This document shows positions 1,480 to 39,090 of a stretch of DNA of 64,000 bases, piece by piece. Source of the DNA: Klebsormidium nitens. Taxonomy: Eukaryota > Plantae > Klebsormidiophyceae. The notes under the pieces are model-generated. The model was given only the letters and a program-made list of their open reading frames with translations, had not been told where the DNA came from and ran no database searches. The DNA lies in assembly GCA_000708835.1 (NCBI GenBank), contig DF237362.1, forward strand, positions 1 through 64,000, in the 5' to 3' direction. Position 1 is the first letter of the stretch; each line of letters begins with the position of its first letter. The position numbers were made by a program, and so were the translations under genes.

Positions 1480-4064
1480 GTCACTGTCCTAACCACAGCC
1501 CGTAACCACTGTCAGAGTCGCGACTTTGATGACTTCAGGTGTTTGCATGTGTTTTACACCTATTTGGCGGGGCAGAGACACTAACAAAAGGAGAATGCTT
1601 TGATAGTTTTGCACCACTGTAAATCGGTACCAATGCCACATGGCATGCATGAGAGTCGAGATTGAGACGCGTCACGCGACACACTTTCCGAACCTTTAAA
1701 TGATTGTATCCGTAAAAACCGCCAACAGTGACGCAAAGTGTACGGTGTACCTTTCTTCAAGTAATTGATAGCTTCTGGGGTATGACACGTCACTTACTCT
1801 GAAAAACTGCGTCACAACAGCTTCGTCTTTCTAGATATTTACGTCATGTGTGCGTCAAAAACTGCTGACACAAGGTGACGTTGTGGTGCAAGCCAATATC
1901 TGGTAGTGATAGCATGCCATCACATTCACATCCCTGGACCCTGACCACTATAAAGCAGCACAACTACCAGTAAGGTGCCGTCAGCATACCGGTATATAGT
2001 ACCTACCAAGGACCTTTAGTGTACCGGTAATACCGTACCTATTGCCTACAGGTATTAATTGGTATCATTATTGATGTCCGCAATGTTCGAAGAATATTTG
2101 ACATGGGACGAGGGCGAATTGAAATCCCGACAGGAAATAGGTACACTACGGTATCCATAATATTCGTTCTGGTAGACCCACGTAGGCCGTATCACCCACA
2201 ACATTGGCGTTGCCAATATGGCCCAAAACAGTCCTGCGACCTGCGGCCACCAGCCTGAAATTCAGGAGAATGAGTTGGAAATTGAGACAATACTTTTTCA
2301 CCACACCGACGGTGACCGACCCACATCACAGCATCGGTGGCTCATCGGTGGGAGGGTGTTCATAGCTTATAGCCCAAGCTTCTACCTAAGCTTACACCGT
2401 GAGAAGGATACCTAAATGACCGGTCACCGGACAAGAAGTGACCAGTACCGCAAAGCGCGCTTTGCGCGGCCCGCGCAGCGCCCTTCACTCAAGTGTGCCA
2501 CCTAGACGATAACGGTGGTCACTGGTGGGTATTGTGACTCGTGAGAGTATGCAATCGTTGAGCGATTGATCCGCGATTGATGTGAATAACCCGGATTCGG
2601 TGATTTCAATATCTTCTCACGTGCTCAACTGGAAAGCTGCCGTCACGGTCACCTGCCTATTCGATTCTGCGCCAAATCATGATTGCCATCTGTCGTGAGA
2701 TTTGACATGGCGTGTGGGTGACCTCTGCAAAACGTCATCATTAGTCAGACGATGGCAGCCGGGTTGCCGCGTGGCTCCTGCGCAGGAATAGGCACCATGA
2801 GGGGACTCGGAAGCTGATCCTCCCGGCCGCCACCTCAAATGCAATGCAAGGGAGAAGAACTCGATTTCTTTCGACAGCACGAGGCCCTTCCAGGGCTTTG
2901 CGCAACAAGAAATGCTTTACAGGGGCCTTCACTTTCCACCTAGATGATGTCGCCAGTTGGAGAGGAACCAATTTTGCAGGAAAGAAGCCTGGGGCTCAAG
3001 TGTCTGCAAGCTTGGCAAGAGCGGGCAAGAGGGGGGTGATGGTCTTCCCTTTCCGACTTCGCGGCTTCGTTAAATGTGAGCCCTGCTGTTCCTTGGTCTT
3101 TGGTAGCTTGAAGTGCCGAAAGGATGATGGTAAAGCTCTGCGTCTTTGTTGTAGGGTATATAGCATAGTGTCTTTACCCTGCCCGTGGCTAGTATCATAT
3201 AAGCATCTGGCAAAGGCTGGATATGGAGCCTTTTACCCACATTGCCTCTCCTGTTGCAGAGCCACGCAGGGCGAGCTATGCTCTGACTGCAACTCCCAAA
3301 GCAATGTTCTCTTTCCGGAGAACGATTCTGTATTTTGTTGGTCCTCTAGAGTGATTTTTCTGGAACAAGGATTTGGATGTTCCTGTCTGTTGCATTTGCA
3401 TGATTGCATTTGGATTATACCTATGTGCTTGGATGCTTAAAGTCCTCGCAGAGATGTATCCTTGTTTCCGTGCGCTCCCAAAGGCCTGCCCTTAGGAGCT
3501 CACTTTCAGGGGTGCATTATGGCACTTGCAATTTGCGGCTGACGCACACTAGCTGCTGAATCTTCTGACCTTATCCATCACTGAAAGCGAGCAGACCACC
3601 CAGATTGCAGATGCAATGTAGTTTGGGAAGATAACAAGGGTCGAACAAGCTCCAACGCCCTGCACGAAAAGCCCTGTCTTTCCTTATGCTATGCCTGTTC
3701 TTTGTCTCACCTTCCACGGAGTTCTTCTCTTTGTCAAGGTTTCCACTTGCTTGATCTGCGGAGCTGCTTCAAATTGCTGCACAGCTCTGGGGTTGTTCAC
3801 AGGGAGAAGTGTCCTCTGAAGATGCCTCTCGCTTTCTGTTGCAGGATTACAATGAGTGGCCTGCTGCAAAGAGATGCTTATTGGGCTTCAGGGCTTCCTT
3901 AGAGCCTGGCATGGTGCTAAAATGCATGTCAAGTGACAAGGTGCTAAAAGGAGAAACGACAGGCACTTTGTTGTTTGGAGATCGACTACAATGATAAGCG
4001 GGAGCGTCTGAGGCTGCATTCAAGAAGTGAAGAAGGTGTGTGAGAGGGCGTGCCGTGAAGCAGG

Positions 4065-7000
4065 ATGGACGTGGGCTTGGACAAGCAGCGCAGTGGATCT
4101 CATGGGGGGTCAGAGTCTGGGCGGTCGTTTCGGAGCAGCCCCCGGGGCTTGGATTTAGAAACTGTTGCGCCGGAGGAGGATGAGTCGGAGCCAGAGACCG
4201 CCGTTTCGCAGAACGGCGCGCCCCTCCCTGGTTCAGAGGACCTTGCATGGAATCGGGACGCGATAGATCCTCAGGAAGAGGAATTGTATACGGAGAAGCC
4301 TCTCATTCCCAAGCAGCGGGGCCAAGGTGATGAAGCATCCGGTCGCGCGAGGGGATGGAATCTGGAGGAGGGGGGGCGCATGCTGCCCCCCCTGGAGGAG
4401 AATTCTGGTGGCCGAGGGGGGCGCGTGCCCATCGTGGGGGGGGTCGGGCCCGAAGGGGGGGGGGTGGGGCGAGTGGCGAGGGGAGAGGAGGTGCGAGGGG
4501 AGAGGAGGCGCNNNNNNNNNNNNNNNNNNNNCTGCCCATCTGGGGGGGGTGGGCCCAAGGGGGGGGGTGGGGCATGCAGGGGAGAGAGGTGCAGGGGAGA
4601 GAGGCGCTGATGAGCATGCGGAGAGTTCCAGGGATGCGGGGGGCTCTCCTGGCATGACGCATCATGCTGGTAGGGAGCGGGGAACTACGATAGCAGGCGC
4701 AGAGGGGCTGGGTTCAAGGGGTGAGTGGGGCAGCGCGTTTCGAGCTTTAGCATGGGCTCTGATCTTGCCTGCTGTGGGAGCTTAGGATGATCAAGGAAGC
4801 CGCCTTTTGTTGTCTCATGCATCATATTTGGTGCGACAATCTCATTGTCTGAGAAAGCAGACCAGTGGATGGATTGGCCAGGCTGAGCTTTTGCTGTCCT
4901 AGCTGGTAGCATGGGGTCCAAGCTCAGAGATGCACGGCCAGCTGTTTGAAAAGGTTATCTTAATTCTAATTCTCTTTTGTCGTTAGATTGCTGCTGCTGT
5001 CCAGCTTTTTCACGTTCTGGCATAGTCTGTGCGTACTTTGGGGGATCAGTGATTACATCTGCTGGGGTGTTCAATTCCCTCAACCCTTGATTGAATTGGA
5101 TCTTTGATCACAGATTTCAAATGCTTGCAATCTCCATAGATTCACTTTAATATGCACATCTTCCAGGTTTTCATGTCTTCTCACCGCTCACAGTGAGCCA
5201 GTATATGAGTTGCAAGTGCATCATTTACCATGCCCTGCTGCGTTTGCAAACAAACTGAACCCCCCCTCTGCTCCTCTCCACAGAAGCGGGCCCCGCTCAC
5301 CCCTCGTCTTTCCAAGGACCCACGTTTCCCCCCCGCCCCGTTGGCCTTGGGATTGCCCCCCTCATCCCCAATCTCAGCGGTATCGACCCCCGCTCCCTCG
5401 CGGCTTCCACCTGGTCTCGCACTGAAGCCTCGAAATGGGCTGCCCCTAATGTCGCGGGACTGCTCAATGCTTCTGCCCCTGCTGTGTCCCTTGGGGGATC
5501 CCCCCTGTTACCTGGCCCTCGCAGGCCCCCAGAGGCCCCCGCCGCAGTTCTCCCCGTGCCTGAGGACTTGGCTGCGCGTGCGAGCGGGGCGTGGCATGCG
5601 TCCCTGGGGCACCATGGCGTGCCACCTGGCACGCAGGGATTGGGTGCCGTGCCCAACTTGGCACTGGGGTCTAAGCCGTTTCCGGGTGACAAGGCGCGGC
5701 CTGAGTTGCAGTGGGCCTCGCCAGGCACTCCGTCGCTTGGAGGGGGGTCGGAGTGGGTGCGGGCCCCTCAGCATGAACGTGCCCAGGTTAGGGACGCCAA
5801 GGTTAGCGAGAAACCCAGCTGGTTAAGTCTAGAGCTCACCGCCACCCCCCACGAGCGGCAGGACACTGAGACCAAGTCGGGAGCTGCGAAATTAGATGCG
5901 GTCCCTGGGTCACACCCTCTCGCTCCAAGCCCGTCCCCCCTCCTACAGGCCTTGCAGAAAATATCCCCAGATGGCGCGAGGGGAGGCCGCCACCTGGCGA
6001 GCACGGGCCAGGCCGCTCAGCTTGTAGAGGAACAGTCGGCGTGGTACGAACAGTTCAAGGCCAACATCTCGAGCATTGCAGCGTCTGCAGAAACAGTGCC
6101 TGTCAGCACCTGGGCGCACGTGCAAGGCGCTGCAATGAAGCCCCCCTCCCCCGTCTTCCCGAGCCCAGTGCGCCCGCCGGCGACTTCGGCTTTCCACAGC
6201 GTGGCTCTAGACACGCGGCCGAGACAGCCGCAAGAGGAGCCTCGGGGGGCCCGAAAGGAAGCCGACTTGCTGTCGCGGATGGAAGGCAGAGAGGCGGGGC
6301 CGGTAGAGAGGGGCGGCATCGAGCCTGCTGTTGCGCAGGCCGCGGGGCTCATCTTCGGGGGCAGCTACAACGCCGTGGTTGAGGCTGCTCGCTCGAAGGC
6401 GTTGAGGGAGATCAAGGGGATCGCGCTGCCGCCCCTCCTGACCAGCACGGAAGCTTCAAGGCATTCCGCCGTGCCAACCCTCACGCAGTTTTCTGTTGCG
6501 CCCCCTACGGGCGCTCCAATGGGTATTCCCCCCCGCGCTCTTTTTGCCTTCTTGTCCGCCTCACAGCCCACCGGTCCTGCACGGCGCTTGCAAGACGTTC
6601 GGATGGACCCCCTTAAGCCCCTCGAGCTTTCCAGCTCCGCCTTGGGGGGGTCCCGCGACACCCGCGCCGACACCCCCCCCCTGGGAGAAGCCGCGTTGCC
6701 GTACAGCGTGTTTGGGGGATCATCCCCCGCGTCTGTCTCTCTGCGCAACTGGGCCGCTCAGTCGGGCACTTCGTCCGTCGCGTCGCTGGACGTGAGCTCT
6801 GCGGTGGGGGTCAAACCGCTGCGGAAACGGTCGCACGAGGGTCTGGATGCGGGGGAGGAACGGAGGCTGGCCCGTCAGAGGTCATTCGACACGGGCAACA
6901 AGAAGCAGAAGGGGAAGAGTGGGCGCTCGCAGGAGCCGCCCCTGAATCTGACGCTGGAGCTGGGCTCGGGAGAAGCGCCGAACGAGGATTGGCGCGCCGC

Positions 7001-8227
7001 GCAACCGCATCCAACAGCTCGGCGACCGAGTCCGCCGCAGTTACTGGCGCCAGGTACGTCCTCTGGGGTTGTGGTCACGATTCTCTACTGAAGTAGCCTT
7101 CAACGTTTGGCTGAAGTCCTGACATGCTGTGTCCAATTGGTGACCATCGTCGAGATAGTGATCAAATCTCGGTACGACGGCCCTTAGTGTAACTCCTGAA
7201 TGCGGATGTCGTTGCCTGCACTGAGGGCTATGTACGTGGAGCAAGACGGGCCCGCTTGAGAAGGCACACTAGGTTCATCTTTCTGCTTCGTGCACTGCAT
7301 CCAGGTTCACTGACTACAGTGAATCTTCGATTACTACTCACTCTGGCATCCGCGAGTCCCTGCCCAAACAAGACCGACGCCGGGATTCTATCTCCCACTT
7401 GTAATGAATTCTCTCAGTTGCATCGACATGTTGTTGACGAGCTGTGACGGCAGCAATTGTCGGACTCGACGATTCTGACGAGTCAAATGGTGAATAGAAG
7501 TGCACGTGTCATTTTCACAGGTGACGCCATGGCATCGGTCGCCGCCAGCACGGCATATGCCGCTTACCTGGACAGCATGAAGGCGGGTATGTCCCTGTCT
7601 GCGATCGGAGGCCCTGCGCGCGCCTCGACGCCCACCGCCAGCTCGTCAGGCTCGGGACCTGGAGTGAGCGCCGGCCAAAACAGGGCCCTGGGGGGCTCCC
7701 TGCTCTGGCGGAGCAGCAGCAGCGAGACGTGGAACTCTGACGCTGAAAGGGGGCCACAAGGGGAGGTCCCACACGAGGGAAGCACCCCGGGCAAAAAGTG
7801 GGGGTCAGCCGAATCGCTCCCTATTCACCGGATAAGCAGCGGGTGCGGAGGGCGGGTTTGGGAACAGGCGCCGGTTCCAACGGTGGGGTTTGGGGTTCCC
7901 GGGGTTTCTGCTTTTAAGGAGGTCCGGGCGAAGGAGGGGGCCATACGGGAAGCTGCCGGGGGGGGCCGCGCGGCGCTCCTGGATGCGGGGAGTCGGGGCG
8001 TCTCACCAATTGCTAGCAGTCAGCAGTCGCTCACTCAGTCTAGCGGGACGGAGGGGGGGGCCGGGCGGTCGATGGCCAGCATTCTAGGCGGGTACAGAGC
8101 AAAGCTGCCCGGTTGGCCGGACAAGCCCATGCCGGCGGACGAATATTTAGAAGCCCTCCAAAGCAGCCAGTTCCGGCTGAACGTCGACGTACGGGAGCAA
8201 AACCCCCGCGAGGGCAAACCCCAGTGA
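4065..8227 (+). CDS. Large low-complexity (Pro/Gly/Ser/Ala-rich) hypothetical protein; exons about 4065-4720 (crosses N gap), 5284-7053, 7521-8227; 5' end unresolved
   Basis: Long open frames. Phase-consistent junctions AGG G|gtgag(4721)...cacag|AA GCG(5284) and CCA G|gtacg(7054)...cacag|GT GAC(7521). Contains a basic patch (RKRSHE...KKQKGK) and LNLTLEL. No recognisable folded domain. Confidence 0.6.
4512..4531. other. Assembly gap (20 N)
   Basis: Run of 20 n, flanked by two noisy versions of the same G-rich ~85-nt sequence. Confidence 0.95.
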
Positions 8228-24762: not shown

Positions 24763-27700
24763 TCACGTCCACCCCAGGTAAGTGTCCAAGAAGGCGACTA
24801 CGCCTAACGACAGGGGATACAACGCCAGGACCGGTGCGGCGGTCCAGAGGGGAAACGTGGTTCGGGACCCGCCCAGAGCGCCCACTGCGAAAGTGGTCAG
24901 CAGAATGACGGTGACTTCGCTGGAGAAGTTCCACGTCAGCGCGCGGAAGTGGACGAGCGCCAAGAAGATGCCCAGGCACACCGTGTTGTTCATCGTGATT
25001 GCGCCGTATACCTGCGCACGAGAGCAGGCAGCCATCGTGGTCAGGGGAGTACGTTAGCTCGACGTGACCCGCAGTTGGTTGGAGACTTCGTCAACACACT
25101 CGCTTCTGATTTTGTTTCGAATCTGGAAGATGGACTCAGGAGATGGGGAGGCAGGAAGTTCTGCCAACTCCGAAGTCCCCTGCTCACTTTACACAATACA
25201 CTTCAGAGGAATGTGTTATGTACGTAAGAGTTCTCTCCTGACTGGACTAGTAGAGTGGAGGGTAGAGTCAACGAGGTCACGCGGCTTCAGCTGGTCCAAG
25301 CCTTACCACCGAAATGTTTGATATCTGGAACTTTCTTGCCAAGTCCTAAGCTCTCTACGAGAGAAGGTCGTTTGAGCCAGCAGATCTTGGATCTGGAGGC
25401 GCCGGTGTGACTTTTTCCGCTTCTTTGGCCGACAATGAAACTTAGAATACTTCGTCGTTTCCGGCTAAGAGCCGTGCTGTTCTCTCATATGGACATGAGC
25501 AGATGAGAGGACGCAAGAATATGACAGAGTTGATGCCCACCTGACTGTACGTCAAGGAGATGTTCCGCTTCCGTTTCTTCTTGGCGAACGTGAGCGACGA
25601 TACCAGCTCGCTGGCGGTGGAGGCGAATGGCGTCACCTGGGAAAGGAGAAGATCGCTTATGAGTTGCATAAAAGTGTTTGCCTAGTGTGGTGACGAGAAG
25701 ATTTCGTAAAGTGCTGCATAAGCGACACGCACTTGATCTGGAGGGGTATTGGCAGATTGCTTTGGCCCTACGCAAGCTACCGAATATAACACCGGTATCA
25801 AGCAGAGTATGGTAAGCACCCTAATCAACATAAAGAGACTTTGGACACAAACAATGACTGTCCGAGCTTCAACCACGCCAAAGCTTTTGGCGATTGTGAA
25901 GGTCCACACCCGTCGGTTGAATCTATCCTGGTGAACCTAACATCCCGAGAAGCCCTCTTGACTCTAAGTACGTTCCACGCACGCGCAAAAGCGCAAAAGA
26001 AGTCCGCGTGTGAAGCGACGGGACGGGATAAAAGGGTCAGAATGGCCCCCCTACAACACGAGGTCGCAAGTGGCGGTGTGTGCAACGCTTCCTCAGCATA
26101 GTATACAGCGAGGCACAGAAAGTGGCGCGCTAATCTGCTCGCATACATATCTCCTGACTAAGACACCTGCCGTGGTGCCACCCTTTTCAGCAATTTCAGA
26201 TTCGTCCTTCTTGACTATTCGCTGGATGAAGCCTTCCATGTTCAGAGTGGATAAATCCCTATTCATAATCACATGAAAAATACAGGGCGGAAGTGTCAGC
26301 CTTTCTCACCACAAAGGCGACGAAGAATGGCGGTATGTTTGACGCTGCCGAGAAGCTCCCAATTGAGTCGACAAGTGGATCCGCAAACACGCCCGCTATG
26401 GCTGCGCCCGCTAGCATCAGCCCCGCGGCCTTGCGGTACACCTGACCCGGCGTCAGCTTCTCCTCTCCCCCCCCCTCCTCCTCCTCGTCTTCGCCACCCC
26501 CCATTTCAGTTTGGAGCAGGTCCCACGTCACCTTGGCCTCAGAGGCTTTTGCGGCCTAGAGAGCCGAGTACTAGAAGTTAGTATGAATTGACTCAGCATC
26601 AAGAATGTCACTCTAGTCAGTCCCATCACGGGTTTTCAAGGGGGCACAGATCAAGCTCAACTGCAAGCTTCGCTGTCTGACCCGCTTCTGAATCCTCTCA
26701 TTCTAACATACTGCAAGGCGGGTATAGAGAAGAGGCTGCAGACGACTGTGTGCCAATCCTTTGCCAGCTTGACCGAGAAGCACTTGAAAGTTGCATCCAA
26801 TGACGTTCTCAAGCAAAGTCTGAGTGACTCTCAGTTTATTCAGGAGTTTCGTATTTGAAAAAGTGCCCCGGAGACGAGCCGGGTTAGTTTGGGTGGTCAG
26901 GGTGAGTTCGGGTGCGGCGCGCATAGACTTGACGGTTAGGATCCTCGAATTAAGACCCGGTAAACTCGAGTCCCTGACGGAATGCTTCTCAACTGAATGG
27001 CAGTTGCCAGTATCTTAACCAGAGGTCCTTGTGGAAGGACGTTTTGCTACCTCTAGATTCAGCAGCAGCAGCAGCACTTTGCAAGATGGACGCAACTCAC
27101 CCAAAACTCTTCGTGCTCTTGCGCTGGCCTGGCAGCGGAGGAAAACGTGGCCCATCTTCGGCTGGCCTTCTGTGACGCTAGCTTCTTGGCCCACCTGCCA
27201 AAGGAAAAGACACCTTAACCAGATACGTAAACTGGTATGATATTCCATCACATTACGGTGTGCTGAGTCCATGCCCGAAGGACGGGTGGAATAGTTCCGG
27301 GGGTTTAGACTGTGTAAGGGTGCGGACATCTGGACTCTGGATTCAGATGTTTGAATTGTCGAGCCGAGGGATCTGATGCAACTCACCGTAGGCCTGATTC
27401 AACTTGATACTGAGACGTGTCTCAATAAGTCACTTCTTATGAAAGCTCGCTCCGAGGACGTCAGTAGGTAGCAGGCCTGCTCAAAGCTGCTCGATCGAAG
27501 AGAGATTGAGAAAGACTGCTTCACGTACCTGCCCATCCCCTCCAGAAACTCGTGCTTGGACAGCTTGCCGTCCTGGTTGACGTCAAAGTCTGCACAGACA
27601 ATCCAGTGCTGATGTCATTCTCAGTAACCGTGCATACTGCGGCCGACATTGAGCAAGGCCCTGCTCGCTCTTTGCTCCGCCTTGAGACATTTTTCTTTTC

Positions 27701-30700
27701 AAGTAACAAAGGAGCTAGTCGTTGCAACAGATTTTGGCCCTTGCATCCTCTTTGCAAATCTTCCAGAATCAGCATGTGTCAGCAGCCGCATCATACACAC
27801 CATGTTTGCGATCATCGACGGCCAAACTCCTTTTGGAAACGCCTTGAGAGATCAAACAGCAATCAGCGAGCAGGCCAAATCCCGAGGTTTAAACCGCACA
27901 GCCTGCCTGACCTTCCATCCAGGTCCGCACTTCCTCTTCTGGGGGCACATCGCCCTCGTATTCAATCCCCAGGCCCAGCATCAGGCCCTCTAGCTCCTTC
28001 CGCTCGAGCAGCCCTGCAGGCAGCACGTGGCAGGCGCTAAGCGAAACACGTGGGAACCTCGTACGGTTTGAAATGATGTGCAGCGACTAGCTCGTGTCAA
28101 TGTGAAAGAGAGATTACCAAAATTCTGCTTTCTTCGAGGGCTGCGACAATGCAAACGGGCTTGAAACGAAGAGGGTTCCAGCATATACGGTGGCTGGTGA
28201 TGACGTCATCGAAAGCAAACTTCTGACTGTGGGTTAGGCCAGATCAGGACCCTCAGCAGTGTCGATCGACGTGCTAAGCAGGACAACATCAGGATGAGCC
28301 CCAGGGAGATTCGAACGGCGTCCCTATTGGAGCACCCCTTACAACCCGTCGAGAAAAGCCATTCGTTTTCTAAGGTGGGCCTAAGAACTGCTATTCCTTG
28401 GTCAGCTGGTGCTTCGTCACGAAAGGAACGGGAAAGAGCAGGTGGATGACGCATCAGCATCTTGCAGCAAGATTTTCCCCGGCCAACCTGGTTGTGCGCG
28501 TCTCACTTCTCCCTGCGCCGCTTACCGTTTTTGTTTCCGTCAAAGTAGGCAAACACTTTCTCTAGTGCCTGTTGGTTTGGTGTCACGCCGTCACCCCGGA
28601 AGAGCCCCCCACGGCCGCCGCCAAAGAGCTTCGAAGCCCGGTTGGACACGCCTTGTAGGGCCCGGGTTCTGTAAGGCAGAGACTTGCGATTAAACCGCTT
28701 CCGTCACCCGTGATTTGAGACCCCAGTTGACCTTGGCTTTGGCTATCGCTCTTGCTTTGGTACAAAGATCTACTGTCGTCGCCGGCTGACAAGAAACCCT
28801 GATTGTTGTTTCCAATGCATTCCTTCCCCTATTTCCAGGAGACGGCCAGATTTTGCAGGCTCCGAGGGAATATCCCGGGCCACGGAGCTAGTTATCCGCT
28901 CACTCTGACCTTCATCTACCTACGGGGACTAAATTACTGTCCCGTACTTGAGTTCCTGACCGGTCAAGCTCGGTCCGGCCGGTGACCATTCCCGCTCTTT
29001 CGAAAGAGCCAAAGGAAAACAGCTCAAAAGTCGCGTTTTTGGTATCTCGCTGTCAGACCAGTTTCCAATCTAACTAAGCCTAGTGAGGTTCATTCGAGAA
29101 ACTAAGCGTCTCCTATGCAGACGCTTAGGAACTCTCGGGCCGCCCAGAAAGAGATATACCGCGAAACGAACGAAAGAGTTGGTAGCTCGGAAGTAGGGGG
29201 TGTTGCAAGGTGGCCTGCTTACTGGAGGAAAGTCAGCCGGGCTTGGTCTATCCGCTTTTGTTGGAGCCACGGGGAGGCCACCTGGCACGAAGACGACGTC
29301 AGCATGAATCAGCAACATCTTAGACTTCGCTTTGAATTCTGCATGCTCTAAGTCTGCTTCTTGTAGTACCTACGAGATCTGCTTGCTTCCTTGCTATTCC
29401 ACTTATTTGGCCCACTCCGTATGTCCTTTTGAGGATTGAAAATCTAGCGGGCGGGTGGAATCGTAACAGCATTCGCCATCTGCATGATGTAGTTCTGGCC
29501 AGAAACGTTGATACGCAGATTGCCACGCTGCATCGATTTCACGAAACATGGGTTAACACTACGCAGCGACAGCTACGCAATTAAGATGATGGCAAATTTC
29601 ACTGCGGAATCCAACTTTCCTCGTTCCTCTGGACACGCGAGTTGCTATCTCCAAACTAAGAAAAGATTGGATGATGACTCCTCTTCTGCATTTGACAAGC
29701 TGCCTCCATAAACACGCCGCCTGTCACCGGACTTGTTTCACGCTGAATTCGGAAGCACTCTATCGGCACGTAGGATACACCAAGAAGTTGCAACCTGCGG
29801 CTTGTACAACGGAAAACTCGTGCACAGGGTTCTTGAAAAGTACAAAAAACGTGACTTTCAGCCAGACCACTTTCGGTTAAATCCCAGACCTGGTATGCGC
29901 AGTAAGCTGCGAGACCCGTGAACGAGATGACGGCTCCGATCGCGGACGCTTCCGGGCCCTGGGCCGGCTGTCCGTCCAGGAGCGGAATCTGGACGACCGC
30001 GAACGGAATGGTGGATGCCATCATGATCCACGCGCCAAACCTGCCGGCAAACAGCGCGTTAGAACGGCATAAGATGGGAGAAAAGGCTGGCGGTTCTTTA
30101 GATGCTCATTCGTGAAACCGGTCAGGTGGTTCATGTTGTACAAAACGCGCACATCCATTGGCGGTTTAACGCTGGTTTCTTTGTTATAAAATCGCGGACC
30201 TAGAAAGGCGGTTGTACGGTACAGGCTTCCGTGTCTGACTGAGGTGGATTTTGCCATGTCGAAGCTTCTTAGAATCGAAGATGCAGGTCTCTTGCTGCGC
30301 GAAACGAATGATCTCGAAGCGAAAGCCGATCTTGAAGCGAAGCCAAGGACCGACCAAATTCGTTGATGGCCGCTCATTATGCAGCGAAGCGCAGTAGCTG
30401 TGTGCTTCGACACCACCTCTCAAACCCTTCCTTGACCTGCATCTCATAGTCGAAGCCCAAACAGAATAGAAGATTGTTCTCTAGACGCTTTCCCTCCGCT
30501 GCAATGCTCTGTTCGCTTGAATCTCCGACCCGCACGTTTCGATCTCCTTGAATCGAACGAAAAGATTACCAAAGCACGTCGTCCCCATAGCCGGACTGGA
30601 TGCCGACCCCATGCAAACTCAGGGCTCTGAAGTATTCTGTCTTGTAGAGAATCGCCATGAAGCAGTCTTTCCATCGTTAGCGCTTAGACAAGACTGCAAA

Positions 30701-33569
30701 AGTTGAAACGAACGACAACCGACACGGAAGAGACTGTTTCAACCTTGCCTAGTTTGCTCGTCGGTGGTGACTCCCGTGCCGGTCAGATCAGACGTCCGGG
30801 TCAGCGTGCGGTCCTTGGCAGTGTTCCCTGGGCCGTCCAGATCGCACCGCCCTGCAATAAGCGAATGGACATTTGAATCATCCAAAGATACTAAAGGCAC
30901 ACTTTAACATTCTTGAATGCAAATTGGCCGATCAGAAGAGGTTTCCTACGAGCCTCAATCAATTCGGTTCTGCGTTATCCTCGTACTTTGAGTGGGTTTT
31001 CGCCTTGTTGACGAGAGGGTAAGGTTCTTCAAACGCCGAAGATCGAGGATCAATCTGCTGTCGTAATAAATTCCACGCAGATGCTGCGTCCATAGGGGGA
31101 TGCTTCGAGAGAAGATGTCCATCCTCGACAGACAGCACGATCATGAGCCGGACCTGGGTGGGAAAGAGATCTGAAACGACCACACAGGTTTGGATATTCG
31201 TGACATTTCCTCCGCTTGACAATTCTAGACGGGGTGTCGTTTCTCTCGCTTGCTGCTACAACAAATCACGGCGCTCAAAATGAACATAGACTGGCAGGCC
31301 CTTCGGTTGTCCTCGTCCCAACAACGAACTGGAGTACACCACACGCTTCTCTACTTGTCAACCATTCAAGAGAAGCAGTGAGGTATGCGTATTTGGACAG
31401 GGGCCTTACCCACGTACAGCGAGCCGGCCCAGGCAACTGTCAGGATCATGATCGTGCTGCCCGCAAGGACGCCCATACCGACCATCACCTGCGCCCACCA
31501 GAAAGGGCGCAGAGGCGATTCGGTCCAGAGAGTCTCTGGAGTTGGAAAGTCTTTATCATTTGAACCTGACGGCGCTGGATAAGCTGTGTCAGATTCCGGA
31601 TGCTCTTGGGTGGTATGCGGAACAAAACTACCGAGTGGAGAAGCGTGTCAGAGGCTGTACCAAAGCTGCAGCCCGTGTTCGTTAGAGTCCTATCGGAATG
31701 TTTGACGATTGTTTGAGGCCACCCTAGTGCTGTCAAGCAGTCAAAGTCGCAAAAGGCCTCTGGATTAAAGTATCGATCCAATTCAGTGACGAGCGTCCCA
31801 GATAAGTGAAAGGGTTCAGAGTTTGTGTCCTCATTTCGAAACGTCAGACTGGCAGTCTCACCTGTTCTTGAGCTTCTGCAGGACTTCCTCCCAGGCCGGA
31901 AACGAGGACGAGCAGTGCGTCGGGAAAGGCGCCCAGGATAGGCAGGACGAGACCTCCAATGATGCCAGGATTCAAGACCTAGAAACGCAGGTAAAAGTGT
32001 TGTGGGCCTAGCTGGAGGCAAGAAAACTCGCGAAATCTAAGTTTGACAGGGCCGATGTGCTTCTACTTGAGCCCTACAGATATCAATTGTCAATAACAGT
32101 AGTACTGGACAGTCAAGGGTGAACGAAAGTCCAGAACCCGGAACACCTAAACTTTCAACGATGAGATCCTGCAACGTTCAGGGACAGGGGAGTTGAGAAG
32201 ACTGTTTGAACACTTCAGAGGTGGTGGTGCGTAACCATGACAAGAGCGTAAATCCCAGTGTGCCTGACAAAACTTTAGGAGATGCTGGCAGCTTGCAGTA
32301 TGTAGCCACGAGAAGAAAGATCTGGAGAGCAAGCAGAGAGTCTGAAACACCTGTTTGCCTCCCTTGTCTGAACTGCAGCGATTCTCAATAGATACTGAGG
32401 TCTATTGATTAGTGAGTACAAGTTACAGATCAAGTTCATGCCACTTTCTCACTTCCAAGAGCAGTTCGCTCCCATCAGATATGAAATTGGCCGCCACGAA
32501 GAGCAGGTAGCCGTAGACGGCCACCAGGAACAAGTTGGGGACGGCCTTTGTGGAGCAGGGAAAGAGGCCGTACGGTTCTTCGCACGCCTTGGGCGCTGCC
32601 TCCGAGACGTCAATGACAAGCTGGGATGCCTCTGCAAAAAAGACACGAAGTTGAGGGAATATCAGCCTGCGAAGAGTCAGAAAGTAAAGCTTCAAAAAGA
32701 TTGATGATGCATTGAGCTTTCAGCGAGCTTACACCTAGTCAAGAGAGTTGATTGCCTTGGGCAAAGAGGTCAAAGAGGCTTCTAGCTGTTTGGCAACAAT
32801 GCCACAAGGGGCTGCGGTCCCTTCTACCTTCTATTAGTGATCCTCATGTCCAATCTTCCAGCAGGTTTCCTTGAACAATTACATTCTACGCTTATTGAAG
32901 GGGACACGTAGAGTGCTGTGATGTGAGAGAAGCTACTATCGCTGAGCGACGGATGCTCCACAGTTTAGCATAGGTGGTCGCTGCCAGTCCTGGTTTGTTG
33001 CGCCCACACGACAATGCAGCCAGGGACGGAGAATTGGACTTACCAGGGCCCTTAATGACACCCCGTTCAAGCAATTCTCTACTATCAGGTCCTTTCATTG
33101 GTGGGGCAGCCATTGCTTCATCCGGATTGCCCAATGCGATTGACAAGCTGAGCGCAATTGCAACGCCCCAGTGAGCAATGCACTTCAACACAGTAGGGGA
33201 TTCATCATGATCCTGATGTAATGAATCCCTTGAACACCGCTGTTCGGCTGATCTAGTGTGCTTGCATCGGCGGGCAACTGAAGCGGTGCGATGGCAAACT
33301 CTAAGAGCCTCAGAAGGCTTGCATGCATAGTTCCTGCCTCCTTGCACTTGACCCACTAGAACTCTGCTACAAAAGGTGCTCGCGTTTCTGGGCTCACTGG
33401 CATATCTGACATGGTGGCTGCCCAGACTTGCTGCGTCTTGAGAAAGACTTGTCTTTGGCAAAACATCAGGAAACAATGCCGTCTTCAGGGTCCAATGAGA
33501 GTTGCCAGCAATGCCAAGAGCTGATCCTTGGATCAATGCAGCCCCGTGGCTGATCAAACAGTGAGCCAT
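24763..33569 (-). CDS. NCL: EF-hand Na+/Ca2+ exchanger-like protein (NCL/EFCAX family), 14 exons, 734 aa, long N-terminal extension
   Basis: Exons 33569-33044, 32631-32453, 31978-31862, 31488-31410, 30851-30749, 30040-29890, 29281-29223, 28668-28526, 28013-27912, 27589-27529, 27194-27101, 26555-26310, 25636-25541, 25011-24763 (2205 nt), all in phase. Family motifs CEEPYGLFPC, GSELLLE, GGLVLPILGAFPD, GVLAGSTIM, TMNNTVCL, LTWNFSSEV; EF-hand loops DGNKNGLLERKE and DVNQDGKLSKHE. Confidence 0.9.
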
Positions 33570-33970
33570 GGCAGCAGGCAGTGCAGATCAGCAACAATGA
33601 GACATGGTGCTGCAGCGAAAGTTAACTTTGTGAGCTAGCCAGATGGAGGGCCATTGCGGTTCTAGAGTTGATCCCTCTCAAACATTGAAACAGGATCAAG
33701 GCAAGCACTGAACAATTTGAATGACATTGACATGTGAGCGAACTTCCTCGCATCAACTCTCATGAGCAACAGGTCCTATCATTATGCCCTCACCTCTGCA
33801 GAGTCTGCAGTCAAGCTGGCACTTTCGTTGTCACGTGGACTCCTGAAGCACTTGACCCGTACGATAAACCACTCGGATCTCGTCGAACGGCGGACAGATA
33901 GCCAACTGTCGCCTTCCATCCATGAGCTTGGGCAATTTGCCAATTTGGCTAGCTGAGGCCTGAATGTCAC
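33570..33970. promoter_or_regulatory. Short (~400 nt) divergent intergenic region, candidate bidirectional promoter for NCL and the DUF4470-MYND gene
   Basis: The two predicted start codons (33569 - and 33971 +) face away from each other; promoter function is inferred only from position. Confidence 0.35.
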
Positions 33971-36900
33971 ATGCCCACGGTTGGAATCCTGGATGAGTCC
34001 CCATGCCCTGCCAAGTTTGGCCAACTTGAAGGCAGCATTGCTATCGAGGAGTGGCGCCCTTCTCTGGACAAGGTTTCTGATTTTTGCAACGACATGGCGG
34101 CCAGACTCCTCCCCTCCGCTGTGCGCCGCATTCTGCTGGAGAACAACCCAATGTGGTACCTCATTGGCAACACGAAAGGCAGAAGTCTGTTGGAGGCGCA
34201 ATGCAAAGAAGCGCCGGCGGTCAGCATTCTCTCTTTGGGCTGCGGTGACATCCGAAACGTGCTTGCAACTGCTGCGGAAGGGATCCCTCGACAGCCAAGT
34301 CCAGCTGTCGCCACCCGTGTGAAGAAATCAGTTGGGGGCGGTTTTACTACTTCTGCTCTGAACTTCCACTTGAATGACATCAATCCAGTGGTCATGGCTC
34401 GTGCGGCGCTCCTGCTTCAGATCTGCGCTTCCATCGAGCCTGACGTCAGCGCCGACCTGGACTTTCTCTGGGCGGTGTGGTACGACATGGCACTGTCGAA
34501 GCCACACCATTGCGCCTACTTTCTGAAATACAGAAGCTACTTGAGGAGAGCGGGAGGGGGCAGCTTGTCAACATCACAAGAGAAGAGGACCGCAGTGCCT
34601 TGGTTCGAATCTGGAGGCAATGGCTGAAGACTTCGGAGCTGCCGTCAGTGCATGCCGTGAAGCAGGAGCGGCGCGCAAACTTGCTCAGAAACCTGGAGCG
34701 GGTGGGGGCCCAAGGGAAGGGGCAACTCGATCCCCCCAGCATGATGCGTCAGGCGATGCCGCTTCTCAGGCCCCAGAAAGAGCAGGACGAGCTGATTGAC
34801 GGTTGTGGGACCTCAATGGCAATGCTGGTTTTCGAGGGGCTGGGTGAGAGGAACGGCGCCTTGGAGCGCCGAGCTGTGAATGAATGTCGAGAGTATTTTC
34901 AGACGGGGAGCACAGCGGGAGAGCTGGAGAGGCCCTTTCTCAACCCGACGCTGCTCGATCCCGAAACTCGAGCCTGGCACGTGCATTACGGTTCGTGCCC
35001 CTTCCTTGCGTATTTCCCGCTAGGTGCCAAGTCAATGGAAGAAGCACAGAAGCGAGCGCTCCATGGACAATATTTGGTGACCTTGTGCAAGGGACATCTG
35101 AAGGCGCAGGTGACGGGATTTCAGGCCTGGGGGGAGAGCCTGAGGGTCTGGCTGTGGCCGGGGGACGCGATCAAGCTCTGCCTGTACGAGATGCCAGGTG
35201 TTGCAGAGTTTGACGCCATCGACACGTCCAATCTGAGCGACCATGTGGGGCTGCTGAACCTGCTAGTGGGCGCCGCACCCTTGCTGAAACGGTAAGCCGC
35301 CCCAGACTGCACTTCTGAATACACCTTGTTCTGGGTGACTTTGCTGACGGAGAATGTTGTTTCTAACTGTGGAAGGAAAAGGCGAGGGAGATGCTAACCA
35401 AGGGCAATGACACTCTGGGCCTCACTTTGGTCGGAACAACTCGGCCAGTGAGGATGACTGCCATTCTCCCTGTGCCTTCATTTCCAAGACCCTGGCCGTT
35501 TAGCCAAATGATCTGATTGGCTGCATGCTAACATGGAATTGATCTTTCAACTCTATTTGAGTGTGGCTTGGTTATCTTGGGTGCATGCCTTTGTTGCTGA
35601 TCGTGTCGAGCACTCCGTTGCGGGTAGGCCAATTGTAAGCTGCTTCCCGGCCATCACAGCTCAATGATCCAGTCTTCCTGGAAGAGTACAGGTTGTAATT
35701 ACCCTAAGCTGGCAGCAACGAGAATTCGTATCAAGCACAACTTGCCTCCTGTGATATCTCCATCTCTTCATTTTCATTTTTCCGTTTTATTCCTGACAAA
35801 AGGCCATTCGTAAGCAGTTTCTCCAATGCACCTACAGGTCTTCCAACTCCGGCCTGTACACCGCCTCAATCACATGGCCTGCTGCCGCCTCCACCTTTCC
35901 GGATTACCTGGACCTCGCTCTGAGTTTCCCCCCTGAGATGGCGCCTTCCATCCTCGGGTTAAGGCTCGTGACTGACCTTCCAGATGGGGAGCCATGTCCC
36001 CCCAACTCTAGCCACTCGCTTAGGTATGGTGGGCACCTCCGTCGACGAGCAGATCCTTGAGTGGGCTGTCCCTGAGCTGCCACGTGGCAAGACCCGATTG
36101 GGCAACGCAACAACCCGACTCAAGCTGCTCTCGGAAACAGATCCAGCGATCGAAGCATTGGGACCGCTGCCGGCGCCCTGCGGAGTCGGCGCATCGCTCG
36201 GTGGTGTCTACAGAATGTGCTGCCCAAAGATCGTGGTCACAAAAGAAGCGGGCAGCGCCAGCTGTGCTTTGGACGCGGTGACGCCACTGACAGCTGTCCT
36301 CAATCTCCAGCGCATGGCGGAGCGGAGGGTCCTTGAACAGGCTTCTGCACTTGAAGCGCAGACTTTTCTGAGCGCAGAGGAGTTTGGTGACACGCATCAA
36401 TTGTTCCAACTAGGATGGGACACCCTCCAAGCGACTCTGACTCTGCAGAAAGAAAAGGCTAGCGACAAGGGTTTGGCTTCAGAAGCAGGGCCGTCGCCAT
36501 CTGTTACGGTCTTTGAGTCTTTGATGGACAAAGACCTCCTAAGCAGCATGTTCCACGGAGTCACCAGAAGCATGCCGATGCTGCGTCTCATTCTCGTGGA
36601 GAAGCTCCCCCGCCTCAAGGACTCAGCCAGTTTGGCCCCCCTCCTCTTAAATGCTCTTAAGTCCGACTCCAACACGCGCTCACTTCACATACTGGACAGC
36701 TTTGTTCTCGACAGTGACGAGCCCCGCCTGTCGTTTCTCCTGAAGTCGGACCATGGGCTGAAAGCTGAGGACACGTGGGCAGTCATTGCGGACATTCACA
36801 GCCTGCTTCCGCTGTACGCACCGAAGAAACTGTCGGACTTCCGGACGTGTGCTTTCGAGCTTGGGTCGGAGGGACTCAGCTCTGCGCAGAGTGTGGGAGC

Positions 36901-39090
36901 GTCTCGAGAGGAAGCGACTGACCTCCAGCAAGGAGCGTCAGACCTTCAGGTAAGAACTAATCTGCGCTAAGTGGCGGCTGTTGGGCAATAATACCAAGGC
37001 AACTCTACATCCGTTTGCAGGGTTGCGCGTTGTTCCGCATAAGAGTACAAAATCCTCAATCTTGACAGGCAACTGACAGGATTTCGAATCATACGGCCGC
37101 ACGGTTTAATAAGACTGCGGCACTGCATCTGCCTTCGCATTTCTACCCCCCTATTTTTGGAGGTCTTGAACCTCCTGAGTCCGGGCGTATGACAGTTCCG
37201 GCAGACGCTACTACTTTCTTGACAGGGTCTTGCAACTCAAACCGTCCATGCCTTTCAACGTCAGCACATTCTATGGTCGTAAGTATCTGACGTTCCACTG
37301 AAACACTTAAGCGCCTTTTGCATCGTCCAGGTGTCCGCCGTGGTCGAGTACACGGACCACTACGTGGCAGTTCTTCGCTTCCCGCCCGGATCGAAAGGAG
37401 CGCTCGAGGTTCGTGGTGCCGACTCGGCTGAAGGGAAAAGCTGTCACGCAATCGTTGTAAAGCTCGGGGAGGCAGAAGAGTAAGTGGCGCCTTCTTCGTC
37501 TGGTCTAGCAGTGTGCATGTCTGGATATAGGTATACCTGTGTCGGCAAAGAGTTGGTATGATGGACGCAAAACGACCGGACGGGGTTCAGTTAGAGCTTA
37601 ATAAAAGCTTGGTCGCTTTCGGATGTTTCAAGCTTTTGATGTTTCAAAGCCTCGAGCCTTGATATTGATGAACATGGCAACAGACTTCATCTCAGTGCGA
37701 TGGTCTGCGACGTTTGCGGTCACTTTCGATGCTTTGTGCCCCACCTAGTTGTTGGATCTCGGCGTGCAAACTTGACATTCATGGGGACAAATGCAAGTGC
37801 GACTGCGACTGCGACTTGATTTTCCCGCCAATATCGATTCGCGTGTTCGGGCTATTTGCAGTATCCCTCATGTGTCTGACCCCTTGGAAATCAATCCCCA
37901 GGCTTCAAAGTTCTTGGCTGATTGACGTGTCCTGTCTCGTGTTCAGGTTTGCGGCGTCTCTGCGCTTCTTACACCCCGTGGACGCATCGAAGGCCCGCTG
38001 CCAGATCTCCCGCAAGAGAGGCCTCGTTAGCTGCACGCTGCCCAAGTCTGCCCACTGGCCGTCCGACGCCTCGGGCCAAAACAAGGCCTCCCAGATCGAC
38101 ATCGGCAGTCTTCCCGTGTGGCCGGCAACAGACGTCGGGGGCCTGAGCTCAGTCCTGGGGCTCATGTTCACGTTAGAGGAGTCTTTGAGCAAAGTGCGGG
38201 GCACGCAGTACCAAGACTCCAACCGGTCCCCCTCGTTCGATCTGCGAGAGACGCTGCAGATTCTGTTCGTGCGGGCGTTCCGGGACGGGTACAAACGGCA
38301 CGCGATCAAGCTGAAGAGCGACGGACCGGAAGACGAGGCCCGTCTGTCGATCTTCATCAAGTCGCTCCGCAAAACAGCAAAGGGTATGCCCCTGCTCGAG
38401 CTCGTATACGCCGATCATGCACAAGCCCGCGCGCTTTTGAACGCGGGCAAGATCGTGGGCATGGAATCCGTCCAGCGGTTCACGGCAGCCATGCACAGCG
38501 TCGGCGGTCACGCGGAATGGCACACAGTGCTGGTATCGTCCGCCGAGCTGGAGCTTCTGCGGACAATGCTGGAGAAGAACGCGACACGTAGCAAGCCGTC
38601 CGCTTGGCAAGTGGCGCATACTCAAGGCCCCGAGTGGCGCGCAAGCCACGTGGTTCCGGTGTTTGGGGAGGAGAAGAAACGGGTCCTCGGCAGAGACGGC
38701 GACGGGCCGGGCATGGAAGAGCTGCTGCGGTCGCTGGAAAAGGAGAGCGCCCATCTGAGGGATCCCCCTGCGCAAGCTTTGGAGGGGCGGCCAACTCTGG
38801 CGGATCGTGGGCAAGGAGGACGGAGCGCCGGGCAGGGGGGTGCGGGAAAGGCCAAGCAAGCGGGGGGGGAAAAGATGCCCGGACAGCGGGGGTATGGCAG
38901 CGAAGCGACGGAGGGGGGAACAGCGAGATTGACTGATACGTGTGCTAATTGTGGGCTTGGGGGGGGCGACGAACAGGGTGGAGTGGTTCTGAAGCAGTGC
39001 TCTCGGTGTAAGAAGGTGAAGTACTGCAGTGCTAGCTGCCAGAAAGCAGCATGGGCCGGGCACAAGCCGCACTGCGTTGCGCAACCGTAG
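33971..39090 (+). pseudogene. DUF4470-like (SAM-binding-like) protein with C-terminal MYND zinc finger; two apparent 1-nt frameshifts (pseudogene or sequencing error)
   Basis: Exons about 33971-35291, 35838-36949, 37331-37479, 37947-39090. Motifs YLIGNT, ILSLGCGDIRN, FHLNDIN, FDAIDTSNLSDHVGLLNLL; MYND CANC...CSRCKKVKYCSASCQKAAWAGHKPHC. Frame switches near 34510 and near 36000 inside exons. Confidence 0.7.

Follow-up and report, generated by a model that had tools for sequence, protein, structure and literature searches.

The stretch analysed here comprises 64,000 nucleotides of Klebsormidium nitens contig DF237362.1 (assembly GCA_000708835.1, positions 1 to 64,000; hereafter the window) and carries on its minus strand, at 24763-33775, a gene for an NCL/EF-CAX-type Ca2+/cation exchanger whose first exon places a leader of about 125 residues in front of a hydrophobic segment ending in A-x-A. 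The spliced model has 14 exons and 734 residues, the length given in an earlier sequence-only reading of this DNA, with a coding sequence of 2205 nt (24763-33569). It was built from RNA joints, a loose RNA end matching 28012 onwards, GT-AG splice sites and orthologue conservation. For the RNA joints, Logan contigs from four runs in four studies, presumed to be of RNA type but in any case spliced, were compared with positions 28000-33999. In all four runs exon 1 was found as a single uninterrupted piece extending from 33044 to 33730-33775, joined to position 32631 (exon 2) and followed by six further joints down to 28525 that were identical between runs. Exon 1 is transcribed without an internal splice and carries a 5′ untranslated leader of at least 160-206 nt. 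Its coding part is 526 nt long (175 codons plus 1 nt) with a GT donor after 33044, and intron 5 (30041-30748, minus strand) is of the GC-AG type, the same joint being present in the RNA contigs of all four runs. One RNA contig of 2622 nt is long enough to hold the 5′ leader, the coding sequence and approximately 230 nt of 3′ untranslated region (UTR). Exons 10-14 lie outside the RNA-compared stretch and were placed by splice sites, reading frame and 83-96% identity in an orthologous locus, L001.

Judged by its domains and layout, the gene product is an exchanger of the NCL/EF-CAX type, with the architecture described by Emery et al. 2012 (PMC3355786). A Pfam scan run exon by exon gave sub-threshold matches to Na_Ca_ex (PF01699; cut-off 24.9 bits) in exon 3 (E 0.1, profile positions 33-65) and exon 14 (E 0.008-0.17, profile positions 64-149), which score under the cut-off because each exon carries only part of the domain, and exon 10 alone matched EF-hand_1 with E 4.8e-5 and 23.1 bits against a cut-off of 25.4. 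In a local BLAST of the joined model, residues 179-501 were 41-64% identical to the fragments P0011, P0036-38 and P0048, all of which carry precomputed PF01699; P0048 has both EF-hand and Na_Ca_ex, and one of the matching fragments is named sodium/calcium exchanger/EF-hand protein by the Atlas. Two canonical 12-residue EF-hand loops, DGNKNGLLERKE (residues 448-459) and DVNQDGKLSKHE (489-500), form a pair within a 189-residue loop that hydropathy places between two sets of five hydrophobic segments. The sequence T-P-F-A-S-T-A-S-E at the junction of exons 12 and 13 resembles the NCL alpha-2 region by eye, without a formal consensus comparison, and no relative in the PDB was found by sequence for exons 12 and 14. 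The N-terminal layout is likewise that of an NCL, with a predicted cut after residue 154, the motif C-E-x-x-Y-G-x-x-P-C at 190-199 and transmembrane segment 1 at 209-227. The same order of signal segment and motif is present in P0004, P0008, P0031 and others, from which the window protein differs in that the segment is internal. Hydropathy and the distribution of Lys and Arg predict a mature N-terminus on the trans side and loops 294-337, 387-581 (containing the EF-hands) and 634-655 (containing KKKRKR) on the cis side, so that all Lys/Arg-rich loops, including the EF-hand loop, lie opposite the mature N-terminus. To this extent the orientation proposed in the sequence-only reading is supported; the stromal side that it assigned to the EF-hands belongs to the interpretation given below.

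The main open reading frame (ORF) runs from 33569 to 32892 and begins at ATG 33567-33569 in the context GCTGCC-ATG-G, the gccATGG that had been noted before. An in-frame stop lies 19-21 nt upstream of this ATG, which encodes the first in-frame Met; the next is residue 153, behind the hydrophobic segment. The window, L001 and a second orthologous locus, L002, all have a strong start context, with a purine at -3 and G at +4, and all begin M-A/V-H. In all three orthologues the frame is open across 175-179 codons (shuffle p 5e-5 to 3.5e-4 each), with 5-14 stops in the other two frames of exon 1; had the leader diverged between the window and L001 to the extent observed by neutral substitution, its frame would have stayed open with a probability of 0.023. 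The leader of approximately 125 residues is genuine coding sequence that has been kept as a feature in three orthologues, and the claim that exon 1 adds an extension before the family core holds: the extension is coding, transcribed and shared. The RNA contigs, the conserved start Met and the open frame led us to reject both a start further downstream and splicing inside exon 1. The 5′ leader at 33570-33775 contains seven upstream ATGs opening short ORFs of 5-43 codons, all of which end before the main ATG; one of them, in frame and of 5 codons, stops 18 nt short of it. In L001 (9700-10000) and L002 (8331-8631) 5-6 upstream ATGs lie within 300 nt, and their presence at all three loci suggests that translation is limited by upstream ORFs.

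Exon 1 was searched exhaustively with HMMER against 1.84 billion representatives, and the only match was P0001, which is the L001 orthologue (Logan, SRR23617307); it is 54% identical across all 175 residues and begins M-A-H, the ORF call running into the intron. L001 contains all 14 exons, with lengths identical to those of the window except for an additional 3 nt in exon 1. P0002, on the JGI metagenome contig L002, came from a word search that used the ORF of exon 2, and the window and L002 loci are syntenic, since they share a divergent DUF4470/zf-MYND neighbour. Exon 1 of L002 (L002:8632-9168) begins M-V-H-C and encodes a leader of 135 residues, followed by the same hydrophobic core and by V-A-S-A then A-P. 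BLAST finds no alignment for the L002 leader, and MAFFT aligns it collinearly at 28% overall identity to the window. Leader length across the three loci is 125-135 residues, with 127-135 in the two orthologues.

Comparison with L001 separates the leader sharply from the rest of the protein. Residues 1-125 are 49% identical with a ratio of nonsynonymous to synonymous substitution rates (dN/dS) of 0.55, and residues 176-734, the core, are 95% identical with a dN/dS of 0.056. At the nucleotide level the leader is 70.5% identical and introns 1-2 are 68-69% identical, yet the leader contains one in-frame 3-nt indel against 21-23 indels in each of the two introns. Conservation within exon 1 is concentrated in the first 17 residues, in an island at about 77-96 and above all in the hydrophobic core with A-x-A-A-P. 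From these alignments the leader is kept as a feature, in its start, length, frame and composition, and scarcely as sequence; low sequence constraint combined with a retained frame and length is, on this comparison, the pattern usual for transit peptides. A metagenome scan with the exon-1 alignment gave no match, and as the HMMER search had returned only the L001 orthologue, the leader has no detectable source in the presequence of another protein.

Exon 1 has a single hydrophobic peak, the 19 residues 127-145 (Kyte-Doolittle 1.74), which is followed by NPDE-A-M-A and then A-P-P, with the predicted cut after residue 154, in agreement with the hydrophobic segment ending in A-x-A before APP that had been described from the sequence. 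The A-x-A is A-M-A in the window and in L001 and A-S-A in L002, in each case followed by A-P, and the core A..G.AI.LSLS.A...P...A.AAP is invariant in the three orthologues, making it the best-conserved part of exon 1. A word search with P0003 recovered 60 N-terminal NCL fragments, most with a classical signal peptide at Met1 and most with C-E-E-T-Y-G-F/L-L/F-P-C some 40-60 residues after it (for example P0031, P0008 and P0004). In a group of low GC content (P0055 on L003, GC 35-45%, probably land-plant) the signal peptide M-A-I-A-L-L-S-Y-L-L-S-L-Q-L-G-V-M-E-V-Q-A aligns with V-A-I-A-L-S-L-S-I-A-L-G ... A-M-A of the window, and N-terminal signal peptides have been predicted for AtNCL, OsNCX1 and OsNCX4 (Singh et al. 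2015, PMC4488139). By this alignment the hydrophobic segment ending in A-x-A corresponds to the signal peptide that the family carries at its N-terminus, here made internal, and only the leader is new. The low GC content of the P0055/L003 group, and its lack of a 66-nt cassette array, ruled out that it represents a second NCL gene of the genome analysed here. The earlier proposal of a bipartite presequence is supported in part, as a presequence-like leader followed by a conserved A-x-A domain, and has to be amended in that the second element is not a new thylakoid domain. Having no Met at the start of the signal peptide, the window and L001 genes must use a Met 125-135 codons upstream; L002 retains a Met two residues before the hydrophobic core. 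Hydrophilic tails of 27-45 residues with early acidic residues precede the first hydrophobic segment in P0003, P0005, P0006 and P0028. These four tails end in G-R-R-E/Q, a twin-arginine-like sequence, directly before an Ala/Val-rich hydrophobic segment. Among the low-GC NCLs (P0055/L003 6001-6492; P0057, P0058, P0059, P0061, P0013; L004, L005) S-S-W-x-R-S is conserved just before the signal-peptide Met, which in P0057 is replaced by Val; these genes may start further upstream than assumed, or their 5′ UTR may be conserved.

The composition of residues 1-125 (Ser 13%, Ala 12%, Arg 9%, His 7%, Cys 5%) agrees with the Ser/Ala/Arg/Cys-rich stretch poor in early acidic residues that the sequence-only reading had pointed out. 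The first Asp or Glu is at residue 35 in the window and at 41 and 52 in the orthologous leaders (shuffle p 0.054, 0.03 and 0.007), and the net charge is +6 in the window and +9 and +12 in the orthologues, though the window and L002 leaders are so weakly identical. Ser and Thr together account for 16-18% in all three leaders. No Arg occurs in residues 1-54 of the window leader, whose hydrophobic moment peaks (0.38) away from the N-terminus; Arg9 and Arg14 are present in L001, and L002 has four Arg and one Lys in the first 28 residues. The acidic residues of all three leaders cluster just before the hydrophobic domain, where only one Lys or Arg lies within 10 residues of the domain and there is no twin arginine; in transfer domains of the Sec/Tat type the n-region is normally basic. 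A twin-arginine signal was rejected, as Arg-Arg 100-101 is not conserved and lies 25 residues from the hydrophobic domain. Also rejected was a signal peptide for the endoplasmic reticulum (ER) at the extreme N-terminus: the hydropathy of residues 4-18 is marginal (Kyte-Doolittle 1.28) and not conserved in L001 or L002, and the hydrophobic core begins at residue 127-131, not in the first 30-40. AlphaFold gave the leader no confident fold from a shallow 3-sequence alignment (predicted local distance difference test, pLDDT, 27-39). A folded or zinc-binding domain in this Cys/His-rich leader was discarded on the same values and because only Cys83, Cys92-His93 and His104 are common to L001 and none to L002. 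The Atlas feature clusters nearest to the exon-1 peptide were CHLOROPLAST VESICULATION (0.85) and PsaN (0.75), both below the 0.9 reliability line and to be taken as a lead only. A literature search turned up no description of an NCL from Klebsormidium or from chloroplasts.

Since the hydrophobic core with A-x-A/A-P is the best-conserved part of exon 1, its cleavage probably matters, and a leader removed by that cleavage can act only before it, that is, in targeting. A leader of conserved length, start and composition, with an acid-free positive N-terminus and a conserved, apparently cleavable signal behind it, would most simply be a targeting presequence. We therefore favour, at slightly less than even odds (a probability of roughly 0.45), the reading that leader and signal peptide together make up a two-part organellar presequence, most likely a plastidial one. 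With a primary plastid, a transit peptide followed by a signal peptide is the standard route to the lumen side of the thylakoid. The acid-free, net-positive N-terminal part would carry the precursor across the chloroplast envelope, and the retained signal peptide would act as a membrane-insertion or export signal at the thylakoid (or the inner envelope), where a type I signal peptidase would cut at A-M-A/A-P. This would leave a mature N-terminus of about 50 residues on the lumenal (trans) side and turn the large loop with its two EF-hands towards the stroma, an arrangement that would match the topology of a tonoplast NCL, with cytosol corresponding to stroma and acidic vacuole to acidic lumen. 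The exchanger would then move Ca2+ between stroma and lumen under the control of stromal Ca2+. Import, cleavage, the target membrane and the transported ions are in this scheme what we infer; what the analysis shows is the transcription of the gene, its structure and start codon, the pattern of conservation, the homology of the hydrophobic segment to the family signal peptide, the composition of the leader and the topology. The more specific proposal that the NCL moved from the secretory pathway to the thylakoid membrane in the Klebsormidium lineage, by means of a leader translated before its own signal peptide, is tentative and on balance rather unlikely, and the inner envelope, with the same orientation, is an alternative membrane.

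Several properties of the gene and its family weigh against a plastidial presequence. The seven upstream ATGs could keep translation low. In each of the three orthologues an acidic stretch occupies the 10-15 residues in front of the hydrophobic domain (QDHDES, NEDCNE, AEDRNE), Ser and Thr are on the low side and the richness in His and Cys is unusual. At 154-162 residues the putative presequence is about twice the usual length, lumenal presequences having roughly 65-110 residues, and polytopic thylakoid proteins seldom use cleavable lumenal signals. A layout of tail and signal anchor is evidently tolerated in the family (P0003, P0006 and P0028, with tails of 27-45 residues), and land-plant NCLs are predicted to have ER signal peptides, AtNCL having been reported at the tonoplast, that is, as vacuolar, or at the plasma membrane (PMC4488139, PMC4982074, PMC7081724). 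These last two points, together with the homology of the hydrophobic segment to the ER-type signal peptide of the family, are also what commends the main rival, which we regard as nearly as likely as the plastidial reading: an endomembrane NCL in which the segment, serving as either an internal signal peptide or a type II signal anchor, is still recognised by the signal recognition particle and the ER translocon, and the protein resides, like AtNCL, at the tonoplast or plasma membrane. The leader would in that case remain in the cytosol, as a disordered tail with a regulatory or sorting role or as a portion of a signal peptide of exceptional length. Its acidic stretch and great length suit a transfer peptide poorly, and its near-neutral evolution also fits a weakly constrained tail arising from a start codon shifted into the former 5′ UTR. 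Nevertheless, three diverged orthologues would not be expected to retain a net-positive tail without Asp or Glu in the first 34-51 residues if that tail were cytosolic and disordered. P0003, P0006 and P0028 have shorter tails with early acidic residues, and the conserved A-x-A/A-P argues for a cleavage that would detach such a tail from the transporter.

The acid-free, net-positive leaders, with several Arg within the first 18 residues of L001 and L002, also fit a mitochondrial two-part presequence, in which a matrix-targeting part would be followed by a sorting signal cut by the inner-membrane peptidase, whose substrates also combine a hydrophobic sorting domain with a small-x-small site. The exchanger would then sit in the inner membrane, expose its EF-hands to the matrix and work much as a Ca2+ efflux exchanger does. 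We consider this improbable, given the lack of Arg in the first 54 residues of the window protein and its low N-terminal helical hydrophobic moment, a length of 125-135 residues that is very long for a matrix signal, and the acidic residues at a place where basic ones normally precede sorting domains. Least credible of all, and in our view highly improbable, is a leader that is untranslated or functionless, with translation beginning at Met153 or Met158, or on a transcript with a different start, and the frame open by accident in a 5′ region rich in upstream ORFs. The seven upstream ATGs and a substitution rate close to that of the introns are consistent with it. Set against these are the frame kept open in three orthologues beside other frames full of stops, the single 3-nt indel between the window and L001, and the conserved start Met and strong context; furthermore, Met153 and Met158 are not conserved in L002, and initiation at either would leave the best-conserved stretch of exon 1 untranslated, with out-of-frame ATGs intervening.

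AtNCL (At1g53210) and OsNCL are built like the window protein, their hydrophobic N-terminal half being linked by a central loop with paired EF-hands to a C-terminal Na_Ca_ex half that includes alpha-2 (PMC3355786, PMC4488139), and share with it a signal-peptide-like segment followed after about 40 residues by C-E-x-x-Y-G-x-x-P-C; they have approximately 585 residues with the signal peptide at the very N-terminus, whereas the window protein has 734 with about 125 before it. Sequences from Sphagnum jensenii (P0031) and the cryptophyte Hanusia phi (P0008), as well as P0004 and P0055/L003, are 41-75% identical to the window protein from residue ~148-190 onwards and, unlike it, have their signal peptide at or near Met1. 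The presequences of plastocyanin, PsbO, CFoII, PsbW and CAH3 present the same order of acid-poor part, hydrophobic domain and A-x-A, but the putative window presequence is about twice as long, has an acidic stretch in place of a basic n-region and is followed by a transporter of ten segments, where theirs precede soluble or single-span proteins. CAH3 of Chlamydomonas illustrates that a transit peptide placed before a signal peptide can send a protein of a secretory family to the lumen. Were the window NCL thylakoidal, its job would be similar to that of BICAT1/PAM71/CCHA1 (UPF0016), a candidate thylakoid Ca2+/Mn2+ transporter (PMC7081724) of unrelated fold and family which, unlike the window NCL, lacks EF-hands and has an experimentally determined chloroplast location. 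For the endomembrane alternative the model is provided by plant CAX1-type exchangers, CaCA relatives with a regulatory, autoinhibitory cytosolic tail before the first membrane segment (PMC3355786); that tail has ~36-65 residues with no cleavable A-x-A behind it, and there is no EF-hand loop, in both respects unlike the window NCL.

Stromal and lumenal Ca2+ signals have been measured in chloroplasts, but few transporters have been assigned to them, and the role of BICAT/PAM71 in Ca2+ versus Mn2+ transport is debated (PMC7081724). If the plastidial reading is true, a plastid membrane would contain a new class of Ca2+ transporter, a CaCA exchanger gated by EF-hands. Were that membrane the thylakoid, this streptophyte alga would offer a molecular candidate for the Ca2+/H+ antiport long known from thylakoids, in the form of a CaCA-type exchanger of Ca2+ and another cation (H+ or Na+) whose EF-hand sensor faces the stroma. 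It would also be a worked example of an ER signal peptide reused as a lumenal transfer signal. As a case of a change in targeting the locus is instructive, with the family signal peptide retained, its own start codon lost in two of the three orthologues (the window and L001) and a fast-evolving presequence-like leader added. Even for an endomembrane protein, a leader of 125-135 residues before a conserved and apparently cleavable signal peptide is unusual in a cellular protein and needs explaining.

Features of the NCL/EF-CAX gene in the window, in order of transcription, with the evidence for each
Feature	Position	Strand	Evidence
5′ untranslated leader of exon 1	33570..33775	-	RNA of four runs, extending to 33730-33775
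Leader, residues 1-125, start ATG 33567-33569	33195..33569	-	Sequence; L001 comparison; AlphaFold
Hydrophobic domain and A-M-A, residues 126-154; predicted signal-peptidase-type cut 33108/33107	33108..33194	-	Three-orthologue alignment
Exon 1 remainder, residues 155-175, predicted start of mature N-terminal (trans-side) domain	33044..33107	-	RNA and model
Exon 2, motif C-E-E-P-Y-G-L-F-P-C and transmembrane segment 1	32453..32631	-	RNA joints; L001 87% identical; matches P0002-P0004
Exon 3, transmembrane segment 2, N-terminal Na_Ca_ex-like part	31862..31978	-	RNA joints; L001 100% identical
Exon 4, transmembrane segment 3	31410..31488	-	RNA joints
Exon 5, cis-side loop, then GC-AG intron	30749..30851	-	RNA joints
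Exon 6, transmembrane segments 4-5	29890..30040	-	RNA joints
Exon 7, start of large loop	29223..29281	-	RNA joints
Exon 8, loop and first half of EF-hand 1 (loop DGNKNGLLERKE continues into exon 9)	28526..28668	-	RNA joints, loose end
Exon 9, second half of EF-hand 1	27912..28013	-	RNA loose end from 28012; GT-AG sites; L001 conservation
Exon 10, EF-hand 2 (loop DVNQDGKLSKHE)	27529..27589	-	Pfam EF-hand_1 match; motif
Exon 11, loop	27101..27194	-	GT-AG sites, frame, 83% identity in L001
Exon 12, acidic stretch, transmembrane segment 6, start of alpha-2 region	26310..26555	-	L001 96% identical
Exon 13, alpha-2 region and KKKRKR cis-side loop	25541..25636	-	L001 conservation
Exon 14, transmembrane segments 8-10, stop codon 24763-24765	24763..25011	-	Pfam Na_Ca_ex; L001 94% identical

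The divergent neighbour of the NCL gene, encoding a protein with DUF4470 and zf-MYND, occupies 33971-39090 on the plus strand of the window and has its L002 counterpart at 2260-8185 on the minus strand. Only some 200 nt separate its start from that of the NCL transcript, and the promoter between the two genes is for this reason probably bidirectional. A gene for a P-type (E1-E2) cation ATPase was found at L001 97-5286, approximately 5 kb upstream of the NCL gene. An ECA-type ATPase occupies 45.5-60 kb of the window, 12-26 kb upstream of its NCL gene, and other genes intervene; the two Ca2+ transport genes may be loosely linked. The palindrome TGACGTCA is present at six sites in the window (27578, 28201, 34441, 40780, 40799 and 44821), the first of which falls inside the EF-hand-2 exon at the codons for F-D-V-N.

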